Shown: positions 1-36,400 of the stretch, in pieces | How the letters are laid out: every line of letters starts with the position of its first letter | Position numbering within the stretch: the first letter of the stretch is position 1 | Assembly (NCBI GenBank): GCA_002104905.1 | Contig: MCFE01000659.1 | Span: 1-49,080 of the forward strand | Direction: 5' to 3' | DNA: 49,080 nucleotides | Source: Basidiobolus meristosporus CBS 931.73 | Taxonomy: Eukaryota; Fungi; Basidiobolomycota | The notes under the pieces: generated by a model | The model's database searches: none | What the model saw: only the letters and a program-made list of their open reading frames with translations | Told to the model about the DNA's origin: nothing | Translations under genes and position numbers: made by a program

Positions 1-1686
1 GGATGTTGTACGAAAAAGTCGAGGGATCGTCTACTAGTTCTTCTTCACGTAAATACCGAGCAATCGAGACAAATTCGGCAGCTAAATATATGCAGAACAC
101 TCAAGATTATTGGACTGGCCTAATATATCTGCACCATCTTATCCAAAGCATCTTACCATCTTCAAGGCATTCTCTAACCATTCCCATGTCCCCAGCATCA
201 CAAAACAACGTCGCCTGGATTTGATGCAAGTGCAGCTTGCTGATCAGGTAGCTGATTCGCATCCACTTGGGGATATCTAGATGGGTACTGGCATGTACAT
301 TTTCGGCTAGAGCAGCATTGTATCTGTATTCCGAAGGAAGGCGATCACTCCATGAATGAAGGGCGCTCTGCAATTGCTTTAGCTTCAAAGGTGCATCCAA
401 TATCCTATCCGTAATCCGTATGATGCCAAATAGTGTTGGCACCTTGTTATTGGAGACTGAACTCATAAAATTCGAAATATCATTAAGTAGAAACTCCATT
501 TCGATCATGAACGACCACATCTTTCTGTCCTCGTATGATAGTCGATACTGTGCGCTCGGCAGCAGGAATGATAGCTGCTGCCACTTCGCTTCGTCCCCTG
601 GTGGCAGTATACACGCTGTCTTCTCCTCTACCGTCATTGTTCTTTGACGTGTCCAGCGATCTAAAATAAGCAGCCACCAGAAGAAACGTCGGCGCTCTTC
701 TTTCTCGATGCCATCTGTAGGGCTGCTACCCAGGGCATCGTGGTCAATATCCTGCAATGCCAGTCCAGACTCCTGCACAATCCTAACAACACGAGTTCCA
801 ATTATTATGGGATTTTCGGTAGGTAAAACTTGATAACTCTTCTTACTTGGTGGCTAGCACTAAAATATGGGGACACGTTTTGATTAGCGTTAGGATAATT
901 TTCAATGGACCTCAAAACTTACTAAAGCAAGTAGTAGCAACAGATTCACGGCCATCATAAAACAACATCAGGGCCAAAAGAGTCAAGGCCATAGCATTGT
1001 AGATGTTTGGCTCCATAAATATCTGTTGTTGGGCCATTTGCAAAGCATTTTCAGTGAAGTCAGCCTCAAGTACTAAATTCACCCATTCCATGGGACAGTT
1101 CGACTCGATTTTAGAACGAGATACTTTTATGAAAAACCTACTCCCAATAGCGAATATAGCTTGGCGCAAAAAGTCGGGAATAATTCGTTTGTTTAGGCGA
1201 TAATGCAGATATTCATGATGGAATATAGGTGCAGGACACCCAAAATGTTTCAAAAAAGTTCGAAGTAGCTCTGTTTGTAGGGGTAGTGGCAGCTTTGAAG
1301 ATGCGAACGATGGATTTGAGAGAGAGTATAGGTGTAGCGACGGTTTCTCAAGAAGTTCCTTACGGCTTCGAGCTATCTTCGTAACGGCCGTTTTTTCTGG
1401 TTGAGGTTGCCTACTGGAAATATAGCTGGTTGAGCGTTTACCTTGCATATATCCCTTCGGAGGACCACGCTAAAGTAAAAAACAGGTTATTGAAACAAAC
1501 CTATTGATCTTGGCAGATATCAAAGCAATATACTTGTCGCGATCGTTTATATTGGCATATCAGGTTACTCTTTAAGCACATAGTGCAAATTGGTCTTTCT
1601 TTGCTACATTTCCGTTTACGACGACGGCATTCCTCACAAGAGAGGGAATCCTTTGTAACTGACTCCAAAGAATTTACTAAACTCAT
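1..1686 (-). CDS. Zn(II)2Cys6 fungal transcription factor, paralogue A (3' end runs off the window start)
   Basis: Exons 1686-1534, 1469-923, 859-847 (13-nt micro-exon), 782-157, 81-<1, all flanked by GT..AG introns. N-terminal CEECRRRKRKCSKERPICTMCLKSNLIC binuclear cluster. Fungal TF middle-homology-like segment (EERRRFFWWLLILDRW). Intron positions match paralogue B. Confidence 0.9.
61..850 (-). repeat. Left arm of a ~790-bp near-identical inverted repeat (pairs with 3863-4655)
   Basis: Manual alignment of the reverse complement to 3863-4655: 718-850 identical (133 bp); 489-717 has 10 mismatches; 433-488 is diverged (about 16 substitutions plus a 3-nt indel); 61-432 has 3 mismatches in 372 bp. 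Confidence 0.95.
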
Positions 1687-3023
1687 GGTACTGCTCTCAC
1701 AATACTGCAACCAGTTAGTACGTCGGTGCTATACCACATTGCAAAAGGCACACTAGGTTGAACACATAAATGCATGCCAAGATATATGTGAAGTTTGATT
1801 GGGCTTTGCTTGATAATATCGTGACTGTTTCGTTACAGAAGAAATTCTAGAAATAACTAATGTTTCAGATCCAAAGCCGACAATCAAATCACACTTGATA
1901 TACGTAGCTACACCGCAGTCTCCACAATGTCGGTACACAGCCCACAACATTGTGAGCAGTATGGACCTCTTTATAGGCATTATAGAATTCTTGCATATAG
2001 GAATGCTTAACAGTATTACTTGCACGTGGAACCATGACATATATCGTAGTGGACCCTACAAGTAGTTAGATCCATTTACACTGAAGGATTAATAGCTAAC
2101 AGTAAAAGAACATCAGCAAAGTGTCATCACTTGTTAACAGAGCAAAAATGCTGGTTTTCCCAATAGCATATTACTGGCTTCGCTATAGGATTGGGCTAGG
2201 GAATTTCTCGGATCCTATGGTTTAATGTTTATTAGTAGTATTTCCATTGTCAATACCTCAGAACAACACACTGTATAGAGGCTGCTGTCATGCCGAAACA
2301 CTCGCAAGAAAAATGTACCAGAGAACAATGGTACTGATGTCGCCATTCAATGAGATCAATGAGAACGAAGCCAACCAGTGCTAGTGAATCTACACAAGTT
2401 CTTTGCAATATCTGCTTACCGCCCAAAAAATTCTTTGTACATCTACTAGCAACCAATTGTGTCTTATCAGCAATACGACTCCTAGTGTACTGGGGAAATT
2501 GAAATAGCAAAGAGCCTGTATCACAAGCCTGGGTGACTCAGATGACTTAGATAAGAACATATAGTAATGACATTGTGTGAACTGGCTCACCAATGCTTGT
2601 GGAATCTAAGCCAGAGGATGGTAATTTATGCCACAATCAATACATCAGTGTTAGTAAATAGTATTTGGTTTTCAATGCCCAAGATGCCAAATGCTCAGTG
2701 ATATTAATATCCACGATACATATTCGAAGATTTTGTGGGGGATATACTTGGCATTTGATGAATTGCAACAGTCTGCTGCGGAGAGACAACTCCATATAGT
2801 ACAAGCCAATTAGATTGGACACTGGGATATACAAATCAAAGCCATCCTTACTATTTAGAGTGCCCTTCCTTATCTAAGCGTATGTATCATATGACCAGTG
2901 CTGAGTTGCTTCATGCTGGATTACAGTATTCTTGATAACCTCGATATATATACACGCGCACAAATCTCGGTTAATTTTACATGAATATTGTTGAGGAAGT
3001 TGGCTGTCGCTTCAAATAATACA

Positions 3024-5137
3024 ATGAGTTTAGCTGAAACTTCGGAATCGACCACACGCTCTACACTATCTTGTGAGGAATGTCGCAGACGAAAACGCAA
3101 GTGTAGCAAGGACAAACCAATTTGCACCATGTGTCTGAAAAATGATACCGAATGCATATATAAGCGGCCTCGAAAAGTATTACCATCTATTCTACGACCA
3201 ATTTACATCGTTCACTCCGACTAACTTGTTTGGTTCCACAACAGCGTGGTCCTCCCAAAGGATATATGCTCGGCATGCGTTCCACGGACTATATTTCGAA
3301 CCAAGAATCCCCTCAAGGGAAAATGTCACCAATGAAAGCTTCGTTGGGCCGTAGAGCGTATTTCAAGGAACCTACACTGCACTTATATTCTCTCTCAAAT
3401 CCCGCCTACGCGCCTCCCAGGATTCCTTTACCTTTGCAAACTGAGCTATTCCGCACTTTTTTAAATCATTTCGGTTGCTCAGCACCATTGTTCCACCATA
3501 AATATTTATACTATCGCCTAAATACCCACGTTCTACCTGATTTCCTACTCCAAACGATATTTGCTATAGGAAGTAGGTTTTTCTTGAAAGCAAATCATTC
3601 CGAATTGGACCCTAGTATTCCAACGGAATGGATGAATTTGGTGCTGGAGACCGATTTCGCTGGAAATGCTCTGCAATTGGCGCAACAACAAATATTTATG
3701 GAGCCAAACATCTACAATGCTATGGCCTTGACTCTTTTGGCCCTGATGTTGTTTTATGATGGCCGTGAATCCGCCGCTTCCACATGTCTTAGTAAGTACG
3801 AAAGTTTAAGGAAACTTTGCACACTATTGTTAAGTATCTTTGCTATTCTTTAGTGTTGGGTGCCAAGTAAGAAGAGTTATCAAGTTTTACCTACCGAAAA
3901 TCCCATAATAATTGGAACTCGTGTTGTTAGGATTGTGCAGGAGTCTGGACTGGCATTGCAGGATATTGACCACGATGCCCTGGGTAGCAGCCCTATAGAT
4001 GGCATCGAGAAAGAAGAGCGCCGACGCCTTTTTTGGTGGCTGCTTATTTTAGATCGCTGGGCACAGAAAAGAACAATGACGGTAGAGGAGAAGACAGCGT
4101 GTATACTGCCACCAGGGGACGAAGCGAAGTGGCAGCAGCTATCATTCCTGCTGCCGAGCGCACAGTATCGACTATCATATGAGGACAGAAAGATGTGGTC
4201 GTTCATGATCGAAATGGAGTTTCTTCTCAGTGATATATCCAACTTGATGAGTTCACTTTCTGATCGCAACAAGCTACCAGCGTTATTTGGCATCATACGG
4301 ATTACGGATAGGATATTGGATGCACCTTTGAAGCTAAAGCAATTGCAGAGCGCCCTTCATTCATGGAGTGATCGCCTTCCTTCGGAATACAGATACAATG
4401 CTGCTCTAGCCGAAAATGTACATGCCAGTACCCATCTAGATATCCCCAAGTGGATGCGAATCAGCTACCTGATCAGCAAGCTGCACTTGCATCAAATCCA
4501 GGCGACGTTATTTTGTGATGCTGGGGACATGGGAATGGTTAGAGAATGCCTTGAAGATGGTAAGATGCTTTGGATAAGATGGTGCAGATACATTAGGCCA
4601 GTCCAATAATCTTGAGTGTTCTGCATATCTTTAGCTGCCGAATTTGTCTCGATTGTTCGATATTTACCGGAAACCGAGCTGGTAGATGACCCATTAACAT
4701 TTTCTTACAACATCCTTACTTCTCGTATTCTCCTTACGATCATGGAGTATACGTTCCGTACAAATGAGAACGATTCTGACTTCACGCAGCATATGGCCAC
4801 GTTAAGAAACGTGGAGAAGTATCAGATGGCACTGCAAGCAAAGCAACATATAGATTCCATCTACGAGCTTCTCTCAGACTCCGTATCTATATGGAGGCAG
4901 TCAGCAAATGATCTTTCTCAGTTGGTAGAGATCAAAACCACTGCCGAACACATATGCGCTGAGATTGAATCTCAATGCATGATACCTTCCTCTACACTAT
5001 CGGAATCGGACACTAGTATTAGCTTTCAGGAGATCATGGAGACACCACTGCCACCCGACATGGACATCTTCAAGGGAAGCGAACCCTCCGATGAGATTCA
5101 AGAATTGAGCAACCTACTACTTCTCCGAGAATGTTAA
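3024..5137 (+). CDS. Zn(II)2Cys6 fungal transcription factor, paralogue B (614 aa spliced)
   Basis: Exons 3024-3176, 3245-3791, 3854-3866, 3931-4559, 4635-5137 sum to 1845 nt with an open frame. CEECRRRKRKCSKDKPICTMCLKNDTEC cluster, KRPRK/RGPPKGY linker across intron 1, EERRRLFWWLLILDRW middle-homology segment, acidic C-terminus. Confidence 0.92.
3863..4655 (+). repeat. Right arm of the near-identical inverted repeat (pairs with 61-850)
   Basis: Same alignment as the left arm. Intron 3 (3867-3930) is 64/64 identical and intron 4 (4560-4634) is 73/75 identical to paralogue A. Confidence 0.95.
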
Positions 5138-5841
5138 TCATTCTGTCAGGTATCTCGGCATGATGATTTCAATTATTGAAGCCGTGTCATATGTATAGAT
5201 TTGGAGCCCTCGACACGAAAGATTACAAAAAGATATAACAGAGCATGATTGTAGTAGACACTGCTCAACATCAACATCAACGCCCATCGATCATTTATAT
5301 CTTTCCAAGTGTTGAAAGTCAGCCTGTTACATAAATAAAACTCTCGGTAAAATCAATTCCTGCGTGACGCTCGACATGAACTACGACAACGGGTTGTTGA
5401 ATCCAAAGATAAACTGATATTGTGATACAACGGCTTGAATGGTATACCATATGGGAATCGTTTGCCTTCTATACATGAGGGCGGAGTTTGTTGTTTGTCC
5501 ACTGTTATGGTGGAGGCGAAAATGATTTTACAAACAGGCGTAACCATCGTGTCTTATAATAATGACTACATACAAACATGTATGTTGCGAAGCAGATGAT
5601 AAGAATGGGTGAAGTCATACAGTACATTAGACTAAGGGAAGATTGATCCATGCTTATCGATGTGAGAGATTAGAAATAAGGCGCTTTGTAACAATGATTG
5701 GAACCATTACACCAGTAAGATCCAAGATCCAGCTGGAAACCATTTCAAGTCAATTCATAGTAAATATCGATATCTCTATCGGTAAAGATTGGGAACAAGA
5801 GTGGATTTTAATTCAAGTCAAGGTACCTTTCTTGACTCATA

Positions 5842-8900: not shown

Positions 8901-10170
8901 CTTGTTCAGATTTGCCAACTGTATTCAGCTCTGCGAGCTTTACTCACCATATTATCTCATTTAAGTCGAAATCACTGAGACTAGTAATAGCCAGGTACGT
9001 TCAAGTAGCCCTGAATTAGTATCGCCCTGATCAGCTCATTTTAATTCGAAGGGACACCTATTGTTGCAAATAACTAACATTGCACTATATTTTATAAATT
9101 GGTCCGTTTGTTGAACTAGAAAGTTGTTTGGATTTGAATTGAATTTTAACAGATCTCCAAAATAGCGTTAGAAAAATGTATGCAAGCTACAATCCTCCTA
9201 TACAAGACTTTCCACAACAAACAGCATCACCCATGTTTATAAAATTTTCAAAATAATAGACTTTTGGCTGCACTGTCCATCTATAGGCAGGCTTTTCGAA
9301 ATTTCATATTTACACCGAAATATTTGTAAAGTTAAACTTGGATCCTAGCCGATATACTTCGTCATTTCTTGTCCAAATTCTTTGTTGGGAAATAGTTTCA
9401 TCAAGATGTCAAGTTGTCCAAGAGACCTAAATCTGCACAAATGCTCTTAGGAGCTTACTAAACGTATTTGAGGTGTTGCAGATATCCACTCTACACCTAA
9501 ACTATATATATTCCACTACAATTCCCCTTGGCTTTTTGCTAGATTATTTACTTGAGTTTTAGTTTGTTATATTTTGACCAATCCTTAGAATTAATAAAGG
9601 CCTAGAAGTTATTTAAGTTATCAAGCCTGTCCAAATGACCCCGCGCTTTGCGCTCTACTTTTTGAAGCCTCTTTCAAAACATTCTTGGCATTATTTTGGG
9701 CACCAATTCCTAAAACCTTTCTTAAAACTTTAGAATTTACATTGCTGGTTCTGCTAGAATCTTACCATATAATTGACCCTGTAGAGCTTCCTCTGGCAAA
9801 CTGACCAAGGGGTTTGAAATTGGCAATGATAAATTGGGAGAACTGGTAAGTTCAAAGGTTCTCACTTTAAATCTTATCAAGTACAAAAGTGGTATTCATG
9901 CTTAGCAACACTTGGTGTTGCAAGACTCTAAGCTGTTGTAATTATTAAGTTGTCACCTAAATATTCATGCTAACTTAGTCACATAGATCTTATTCTTTGA
10001 TTAGCATTCTGTCCTGACCAAATTTCTTGTCGGGACTTAGAATATTTTCACCAAATTATCAGGTGCCCAGATTATGATCTTTCTCAGAGTTGTCCAAAAG
10101 CCCCCAAACTTTGCACACATATTCTTGGGACCTTCCTTAACAAACTCTACACGTTTGCTTGCTCTATCTT

Positions 10171-35739: not shown

Positions 35740-36400
35740 TGTTTAGTGTTGTTGCAAGAGTTTTGGGGAAGTGATTGGGGGAGCAAGTAGATTATGTAAT
35801 TTTCACTTAATAATCTATTGAATATAAAAGTAGTATTGAAATTTTACCTAGTCTTGGCAAAAAAACACATACAAAAGGCTCCGAAGGGTATGTGTGCAAA
35901 GTTTGGGGACCTTTGGACAACTTTGAGAATTTTCTTGTTCTGGGTACCTGATGTTTTGGTGAAATATTACAAGTAAATCCAAACAAAAAATTTGGGCAAG
36001 ATATTCCACGATCCATAGATTATGATGTAAGTGACTGAGTTAATGGAATATCTAGGTGCAATTACGAAATTTAAAACAGGTGTGTGCTTGTTTAGTATGC
36101 AAGACTTAGATTATGGAAAGAATTAGAAGGATGTGTGAATGTTTTTGTGCTCTTGGGTCATGAAAATTTAGAAGGGCTAATGGGATATATGAGAGAATAA
36201 CGCTGAGTGGAAAAATAAGATCCTTCAACCAAGTGACTATGGAGAGATACCCTGCTATGATAATGTTGAAAGGTATTAGACACCAAATATATCTGAGAAA
36301 GATGAGGAAAATGAATCTCAGGATGAAGAGCTCCCAGAAATACTTATTGCAATAGATGTGTTATATGGTGTTGGGCCAAATCAAAACCAGTCTCGATGTA
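35740..36400 (+). pseudogene. Second, opposite-orientation copy of the decayed family at 9150-10320
   Basis: TATGTGTGCAAAGTTTGGGGACCTTTGGACAACTTTGAGAA (35889-35929) aligns with the reverse complement of ~10085-10122. Similarity extends over roughly 35740-36070. One + frame reads GYVCKVWGPLDNFENFLVLGT*CFGEILQVNPNKKFGQDIPRSIDYDVSD*VNGISRCNYEI*..LWKELEG, followed by an acidic patch SEKDEENESQDEELPE. Confidence 0.55.

Follow-up and report, generated by a model that had tools for sequence, protein, structure and literature searches.

Two genes for Zn2Cys6 transcription factors, here called A and B, lie at the beginning of contig MCFE01000659.1 of Basidiobolus meristosporus CBS 931.73. They are arranged head-to-head, as inverted copies located about 3 kb apart. 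A sequence-only reading of this DNA had described them as old paralogues sharing a sharply bounded, nearly identical part that includes two introns, and had attributed this to repeated ectopic gene conversion. The locus thus raises the question of how two old genes came to be almost the same over part of their length, and whether one exchange or many are needed to account for it. The sequence studied, referred to as the window, is the whole contig with its 49,080 bp.

Both genes can be read as five-exon models. Gene A runs into the contig end at position 1 of the window, no more than 60 nt past the nearly identical part; its introns all follow the GT..AG rule, and its joined exons comprise 473 codons without a stop. 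Joining the exons of gene B and counting stops likewise yields an intact reading frame. A and B share exon lengths of 153, 547, and 13 nt with the full-length paralogue P0123 (hereafter paralogue C), whose tblastn alignment to gene B spans residues 1-585. The last three exon boundaries of gene B are those of the JGI model P0121 (3854-3866, 3931-4559, and 4635 onward). The five-exon model is therefore backed independently by the P0121 boundaries and by the exon lengths of P0123. The public models of the two genes, P0121 and P0122, are truncated and devoid of the DNA-binding domain, whereas the complete genes are readable in the DNA.

In the domain and family searches, exons and ORFs were queried separately. 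PF00172 (Zn_clus) matches exon 1 of both genes past the cut-off, with E values of 4.4e-11 for A and 1.1e-10 for B, and both exon-1 peptides contain the six-cysteine pattern C-X2-C-X6-C-X6-C-X2-C-X6-C. The match of PF04082 (Fungal_trans) to the exon-4 ORF is marginal, as the scores of 24.1 (A) and 23.6 bits (B) barely pass the cut-off of 23. For P0123, both domains are present in the precomputed annotation. A and B share the six-cysteine cluster and the downstream PF04082 match with Gal4-type Zn2Cys6 factors, which carry a fungal-specific middle homology region. In contrast to that class in general, close relatives of A and B were found only in Basidiobolus by protein search. A and B are paralogues encoding a Basidiobolus Zn2Cys6/Fungal_trans factor; they are old and intact and are arranged head-to-head. 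A blastn comparison of the two upstream halves of the region between them gave only chance-level matches besides the overlap built into the query. With respect to CGG-type sites, this region contains a single CCG..CGG without clear meaning.

The identity between A and B changes abruptly along the genes. Exons 1 and 2 are 68-72% identical, with 49 of 153 nt differing in exon 1, and introns 1 and 2 are effectively unalignable, reaching 51.6% in a global alignment. Near-identity begins at A850/B3863, within the 13-nt micro-exon. From there, 133 bp (A850-718) are free of mismatches, 229 bp (A717-489) contain 10, and a short diverged island is followed by a further long stretch, until identity collapses at the first mismatch past it, A60/B4656. 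Intron 3 is identical at 64/64 positions (100%), intron 4 at 73/75 (97.3%), and exon 4 is 95.7% identical. All lengths, mismatch counts, and end points given by the sequence-only reading, including those of exon 1 and the introns, were reproduced. Its view that the DNA-binding and linker half has stayed distinct does not hold in full, because exon 2 contains an 80-bp tract, probably converted, which it had missed and which extends to A1031/B3683 if one mismatch is allowed. The C-terminal tails, which it also considered distinct, can be compared over no more than 60 nt before the contig ends inside gene A. The features are listed in the table below.

Table. Coordinates of the two genes and of the tracts defined between them (window positions).
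Feature	Position in window	Strand	Counterpart in gene B	Remarks
Gene A, Zn2Cys6 transcription factor	1..1686	-		3' end lost at contig end
Gene A exons	1686-1534, 1469-923, 859-847, 782-157, 81-1	-		859-847 is the 13-nt micro-exon
Intergenic region, common to both genes, divergent	1687..3023	.		1,337 bp, 39% GC
Gene B, complete paralogue	3024..5137	+		614 codons and stop
Gene B exons	3024-3176, 3245-3791, 3854-3866, 3931-4559, 4635-5137	+		
Tract 1, probably converted	61..432	-	4284-4655	372 bp, 3 mismatches; 3' part of exon 4, whole intron 4, first 21 nt of exon 5
Island, unconverted	433..488	-	4225-4283	56 bp; 16 substitutions and a 3-nt (one-codon) indel
Tract 2, probably converted	489..850	-	3863-4224	Last 4 nt of micro-exon, intron 3, 5' part of exon 4
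Tract 3, probably converted, exon 2	943..1022	-	3692-3771 (+)	80 identical bp
Gene B arm matching tracts 1 and 2 and the island	3863..4655	+		

This pattern is far beyond chance. Over introns and third codon positions, the longest matching run comprises 100 columns, compared with a maximum of 45 in 20,000 permutations. Tract 3 corresponds to a run of 26 matching silent columns, the chance of which is about 1e-8 per start position. The 229-bp stretch within tract 2 has 10 mismatches, of which two unconverted 7-bp clusters (A686-680 and A652-646; clustering P = 3e-4) account for eight; A717 and A533 are single mismatches. Most differences within the clusters alter amino acids, namely F/L and TRQ/AQK. 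In total, six single mismatches are spread evenly over the 809 converted bp (P = 0.95).

Silent sites separate the two kinds of sequence clearly. Outside the tracts, the silent-site divergence pS between A and B is 0.72-0.80 and thus saturated, as opposed to 0.00-0.07 inside the tracts of A61-850/B3863-4655. The exon-4 part of tract 1 has a pS of 0.017 and tract 2 one of 0.073. For tract 3 it is 0.06, while the same codons reach 0.90-0.96 against paralogue C. The island, with a pS of 0.72, lies at the background level. Here, A and B match paralogue C at different sites, so both versions of the island are genuine old sequence. Where pS is about 0.73, pN is about 0.21, and by this ratio both genes are under purifying selection.

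Paralogue C serves as an internal reference for the nearly identical part. In exon 4 it shares 69% nucleotide identity with A and B at a pS of about 0.7, its general level against both genes, and its introns 3 and 4 are 45-51% identical to theirs (intron 4: 51%). Because P0123 shows this ordinary divergence in exon 4 and in the introns, selection has no explanatory power for the identity between A and B; on this point the sequence-only reading, which had preferred ectopic conversion to selection on the protein, is borne out. Two small trees were calculated from alignment columns joined by class. The unconverted columns give an unresolved three-way split of A, B, and C with long branches for A (0.38) and B (0.17), while in the tree of converted columns the branches are 0.027 for A and 0 for B. 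Judged by their sequences, A and B are as old as their split from this third paralogue, which is located on another contig. Reading a donor direction from the branch lengths was considered and dropped, as rates differ between regions. GC3 in the tract is 0.52-0.54 for A, B, and the unconverted paralogue C alike. The GC3 test for GC-biased conversion hence gave no excess over C, and there is no footprint of biased conversion.

Close relatives were sought with word-based protein searches using the exon-4 ORF and P0121 as queries. These returned only the two models of the window, two B. meristosporus paralogues, and one protein of B. ranarum, P0124, which is placed outside A, B, and C. Proteins of other strains or of Logan origin were not among the matches of these searches, nor were B9252 and B8920. 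A B. ranarum contig anchored on the neighbouring ABC-F gene, only 5.9 kb in length, contains no orthologue of A or B. In B. meristosporus itself, the paralogous ABC-F segment on MCFE01000036.1 harbours only a decayed B-like relic adjoining the ABC-F gene and no intact copy.

Taken together, two old and intact genes show an identity pattern that is real in this single PacBio assembly and for which selection can be excluded as an explanation. Three features of gene conversion are found: diverged flanks (68-72%) stand against a bounded tract (96-100%), silent sites and introns are homogenised, and the tract is not conserved in C. The identity of A and B is therefore probably the result of genuine ectopic gene conversion, whatever its tempo, and this includes a long-term recurrent process. 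With regard to tempo, the balance tips slightly towards conversion at a single time, in one event or a short burst, which left a patchy tract and is sufficient for the pattern. The 'repeated' conversion and long-term concerted evolution put forward by the sequence-only reading are not required, because the extra mismatches are clustered, the single mismatches are even, and GC3 shows no footprint.

Mechanistically, a DNA break in one copy may have been repaired by homologous recombination, for which the inverted copy some 3 kb distant would have served as template. This transfer would have been non-reciprocal and without detectable crossover, and the copied span would have covered roughly A1031-61/B3683-4655. 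Patchy correction of mismatches in the heteroduplex could then have produced the mosaic of three converted tracts of 80, 362, and 372 bp. The pieces left unconverted between them would be a 92-bp gap over intron 2, the two 7-bp clusters, and the 56-bp island. The inverted orientation would allow exchange from arm to arm without deletion of the pair, so that the pair persists. Divergence since the conversion would amount to about 0.7%.

The main competitor concerns tempo and assumes that, ever since the duplication, homogenisation has kept recurring in the 3' half, while the flanks, the island, and the clusters escaped, perhaps because selection maintains different residues there in A and B. 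The amino acid changes in the two 7-bp clusters are in line with such selection, and the converted tracts are separate. Recombination would also be hard to start at about 70% identity with saturated silent sites, which makes a region that never diverged attractive. However, the island is as diverged at silent sites as the flanks and would have had to escape early, while both of its sides kept converting. The even spread of single mismatches across all tracts and the GC3 shared with unconverted C speak against it as well, and long-term concerted evolution is considered unlikely. Even less can be said for purifying selection at the nucleotide level, for instance on an intronic RNA or a regulatory element, as the reason why the copies are identical. 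Introns 3 and 4 of C are unrelated to those of A and B, synonymous sites are saturated in the same exon, no Rfam family was found in the window, and no supporting point emerged; the probability of this explanation is negligible.

The assembly, too, might be responsible, either for the near-identity shown by arm A or for the placement of the genes head-to-head, through a chimeric contig end or cross-polishing. Arm A constitutes the first 850 bp of the contig, which ends 60 nt past the tract, the CBS 931.73 assembly is PacBio-based (PMC7466969), and neither copy was matched by an independently assembled sequence or a transcript in the searches of protein collections. On the other hand, arm A is unlike arm B at the island, including its in-frame codon indel, at the two clusters, and in the diverged tail, where the positions matching C differ between A and B. 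All splice sites of gene A are perfect and its frame is open throughout, unlike those of a poorly supported chimeric end, and a fold-back would yield a perfect palindrome without a diverged 3-kb spacer. An artefact is accordingly very improbable. The history could finally be reversed, with a young inverted duplication in which the 5' half, the island, and the tail of one copy were later overwritten from a distant third paralogue, since with two sequences alone the mosaic would be formally symmetrical. Against this, no donor was found among the B. meristosporus relatives, of which P0123 shares 60% and P0125 45% of the unconverted columns with A, in a search that unannotated or badly modelled genes could have escaped. 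In addition, B has its original ends, both 5' and 3', at this locus, because the decayed B-like relic adjoins the paralogous ABC-F gene on MCFE01000036.1. This reversed order of events is regarded as highly improbable.

Conversion of adjacent inverted paralogues, short introns included, has documented precedent. In Caenorhabditis, interlocus conversion between adjacent paralogues is known from the inverted hsp16 modules, from col-12/col-13, and from hsp70 pairs (PMC3966223). Like A and B, these pairs are adjacent and some are inverted, and they combine diverged flanks with near-identical cores, the tracts measuring hundreds of bp and crossing short introns (PMC3966223); for A and B, conversion is read from a comparison of paralogues. 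Unlike the Caenorhabditis pairs, A and B belong to an early-diverging fungus, their silent-site background is saturated, and their tract is visibly discontinuous, being interrupted by islands of old sequence.

Large palindromes, such as those of the human Y chromosome, are inverted repeats kept near-identical by intrachromosomal conversion from arm to arm. Their arms range from tens of kb to Mb and are identical throughout. A and B resemble them in lying inverted on one chromosome, where crossing over from arm to arm would leave the spacer inverted and not deleted. In contrast to the palindromes, only about 800 bp of genes of 1.7-2.1 kb are homogenised, and the remainder is old. The process itself is ordinary, and the locus probably represents a clean case of it. 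Among the papers searched, none dealt with gene conversion in Basidiobolus.

The near-identical inverted arms could constitute a recurrent recombination substrate, and pairs of this sort might serve B. meristosporus as a regular means of homogenising gene halves or exchanging them, a reading that is speculative and has little probability. If it were true, a crossover would flip the 3-kb segment 851-3862, which contains the promoters and DNA-binding halves of A and B, so that each DNA-binding half would be paired with the C-terminal tail of the other gene. In the one assembly used, this segment is present in a single orientation. Genome-level inference on the retention and reshaping of duplicates in Basidiobolus goes beyond what a single locus establishes. 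The more immediate consequences concern the genes themselves. The public models P0121 and P0122 miss a DNA-binding domain that is readable in the DNA, and a tree or date estimate that relies on exon 4 would give the false impression that A and B duplicated very recently. For an early-diverging fungus, the locus offers what is probably a clean interlocus conversion, in which the patchiness of the tract is plain to see and a third paralogue supplies the internal control.

Genes A and B, the head-to-head Zn2Cys6 transcription factor paralogues, were modelled on the architecture of P0123, a full-length third paralogue of Basidiobolus meristosporus (hereafter C). Pfam detects the Zn2Cys6 cluster in exon 1 of A and of B; the Fungal_trans match, located in the long ORFs 110-853 (minus) and 3854-4606 (plus), is marginal. 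Exons and ORFs were searched singly, and exons were joined solely for stop counting. The introns of A and B are GT..AG throughout, and mapping of P0121, the public JGI model of gene B, onto the DNA confirmed the 13-nt micro-exon, the 64-nt intron 3 and the 75-nt intron 4. P0121 (383 aa; window 3746-5137) and P0122, the model of gene A (141 aa; window 345-968), are both truncated and lack the DNA-binding exon. The public model of the more distant paralogue P0125 (L005 5899-6660) is likewise truncated, without the Zn-cluster exon. Despite the truncated models, exons 1 and 2 of A, B and P0125 are intact and can be read from the DNA. P0121 also contains a 39-nt intron (4883-4921) that is probably spurious, as the frame remains open across it and the residues it removes align with P0123.

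Gene structures of A, B and C and segment-wise comparison of A with B
Feature	Position or length	Strand	Observation
Gene A exons	1686-1534, 1469-923, 859-847, 782-157, 81-1	minus	P0123 architecture; 473 codons, zero stops, cut by contig end
Gene B exons	3024-3176, 3245-3791, 3854-3866, 3931-4559, 4635-5137	plus	P0123 architecture; 614 codons + stop
P0121 exons	3746-3791, 3854-3866, 3931-4559, 4635-4882, 4922-5134	plus	JGI model mapped back to DNA
P0123 (locus L004) exons	153, 547, 13, 623, 431 nt		full-length paralogue C
Exon 1, A-B			49/153 differences
Introns 1 and 2, A-B			51.6% identical
A850-718 vs B	133 bp		identical
A717-489 vs B	229 bp		10 mismatches
A488-433 vs B	56-bp island		16 substitutions + 3-nt indel
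A432-61 vs B	372 bp		3 mismatches
Intron 3, A-B			64/64 identical
Intron 4, A-B			73/75 identical
A60/B4656			identity collapse begins: first mismatch

The two arms were compared by global alignment and by segment-wise alignment including paralogue C, and together these reproduced all figures of the sequence-only reading. An additional tract, absent from that reading, is located in exon 2 (A1022-943/B3692-3771), where 80 bp are identical; allowing a single mismatch extends the tract to 89 bp. The window is the entire contig MCFE01000659.1 (assembly GCA_002104905.1), and its position 1 is a contig end, which falls within exon 5 of gene A (window 1-81), 60 nt past the converted arm's outer boundary. 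The remainder of gene A must be on another contig or unassembled. Distinct C-terminal tails had also been proposed; A1-60 does differ from B, but this comparison is confined to the 60 nt before the contig end. The last 15 nt of gene A (A1-15) match B again at 14 of 15 positions.

According to exon-by-exon Nei-Gojobori counts, pS between A and B is 0.72-0.80 outside the tracts (exon 1, the bulk of exon 2, the island and the tail of exon 5) and 0.00-0.07 within the three tracts. Over the codons of the tracts, A-C and B-C pS amount to ~0.7-0.96; identity to C is 69% in exon 4 and 45-51% in introns 3 and 4. The longest matching run across introns and third codon positions spans 100 columns, compared with a maximum of 45 in 20,000 permutations. 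The exon-2 tract by itself contains 26 consecutive silent matches at a background match rate of 0.49. An Rfam scan of the whole window revealed no RNA family. Selection as the cause of the A-B identity is ruled out by the pS contrast, the divergent C, the run-length permutations and the lack of an Rfam family. The proposal of ectopic gene conversion instead of protein-level selection therefore stands, since silent sites and introns are homogenised in the tracts and diverged in C, and A-B gene conversion is well supported.

Alignment columns were pooled by class solely for two five-row trees. In unconverted columns, protein identity is 64% (A-B), 60% (A-C) and 66% (B-C), and the maximum-likelihood tree joins A, B and C in an unresolved trichotomy, set apart from the B. 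ranarum protein P0124 and the distant paralogue P0125 with 97/97 support. Terminal branches measure 0.38 (A), 0.17 (B) and 0.30 (C) in these columns, and 0.027 (A) and 0 (B) in converted ones. Identities and tree indicate that the A/B split is about as old as the split from the paralogue on another contig. The A-B pN of ~0.21 where pS is ~0.73 points to purifying selection on both genes.

Conversion had been described as repeated, and recurrence is attractive, as it spares the need to initiate recombination between copies just 70% identical. However, the 229-bp stretch need not be an older layer: eight of its 10 mismatches sit in two 7-bp clusters (A686-680 and A652-646), and of the nine intervals separating mismatches, six measure <=3 nt (permutation P = 3.5e-4). 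With the clusters counted as small unconverted patches, six single mismatches are left in 809 converted bp (0.74%), and their distribution across the five converted segments is consistent with one rate (P = 0.95). Third-position GC in the tract (A 0.54, B 0.52, unconverted C 0.52) shows no footprint of long-term GC-biased conversion. One event, or a short burst, that left a discontinuous tract thus suffices.

If only A and B are considered, the reverse history is conceivable, in which a young inverted duplicate could have had its diverged parts overwritten from a third paralogue. No donor was found among the relatives returned by the protein searches, with P0123 60% and P0125 45% identical to A in unconverted columns, and both ends of B are native to the locus, given a B-like relic beside a paralogous ABC-F gene (window 3019-3349 vs L001 9657-9353, 72%; window 5113-5180 vs L001 9336-9269, 75%). 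The position of arm A at the extreme end of the contig calls for caution over an artefact, namely that its identity was produced in assembly. Yet arm A departs from B in the island, which carries an in-frame codon indel, in the two clusters and in the tail A1-60, and along its whole length gene A keeps canonical splice sites and its reading frame open. Moreover, at sites differing between A and B, the two agree with C at different positions, the pattern expected of two independent old lineages. A fold-back read artefact is improbable, as it predicts a perfect palindrome, whereas the arms are 3 kb apart; between them lie paralogous sequence 50-72% identical and a non-homologous promoter region. 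The assembly of strain CBS 931.73 is PacBio-based (PMC7466969). Among the protein collection matches, there was no independent assembly or transcript of A or B.

The decayed relic (L001 9269-9657, MCFE01000036.1) adjoins a 75%-identical ABC-F paralogue and comprises exon 1, intron 1 and the beginning of exon 2 fused to the 3' end, all in between being deleted. Its location indicates that the neighbourhood of transcription factor and ABC-F gene is older than an old segmental duplication. In B. ranarum, a weak TF-tail-like stretch (JASJQH010001457.1, L002, 128-463; ~27% aa identity to B exon 5) is located upstream of the ABC-F orthologue on the same strand, while B and ABC-F are convergent in the window. 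This stretch is truncated where its contig stops and probably belongs to another member of the family. The window also contains an 85-nt inverted repeat (10046-10130 and 35880-35964), whose arms lie 25.7 kb from each other and are 82% complementary; it may represent copies of a short repeat element.

Flip-flop inversion at the A/B arms is a speculative reading, though mechanically possible. There is ample documentation, e.g., in Caenorhabditis (PMC3966223), of gene conversion among adjacent paralogues; inverted pairs are among the cases, and short introns can be part of the converted sequence. The literature search returned no study of gene conversion in Basidiobolus. The process is ordinary gene conversion, and A and B provide a new example of it in an early-diverging fungus.
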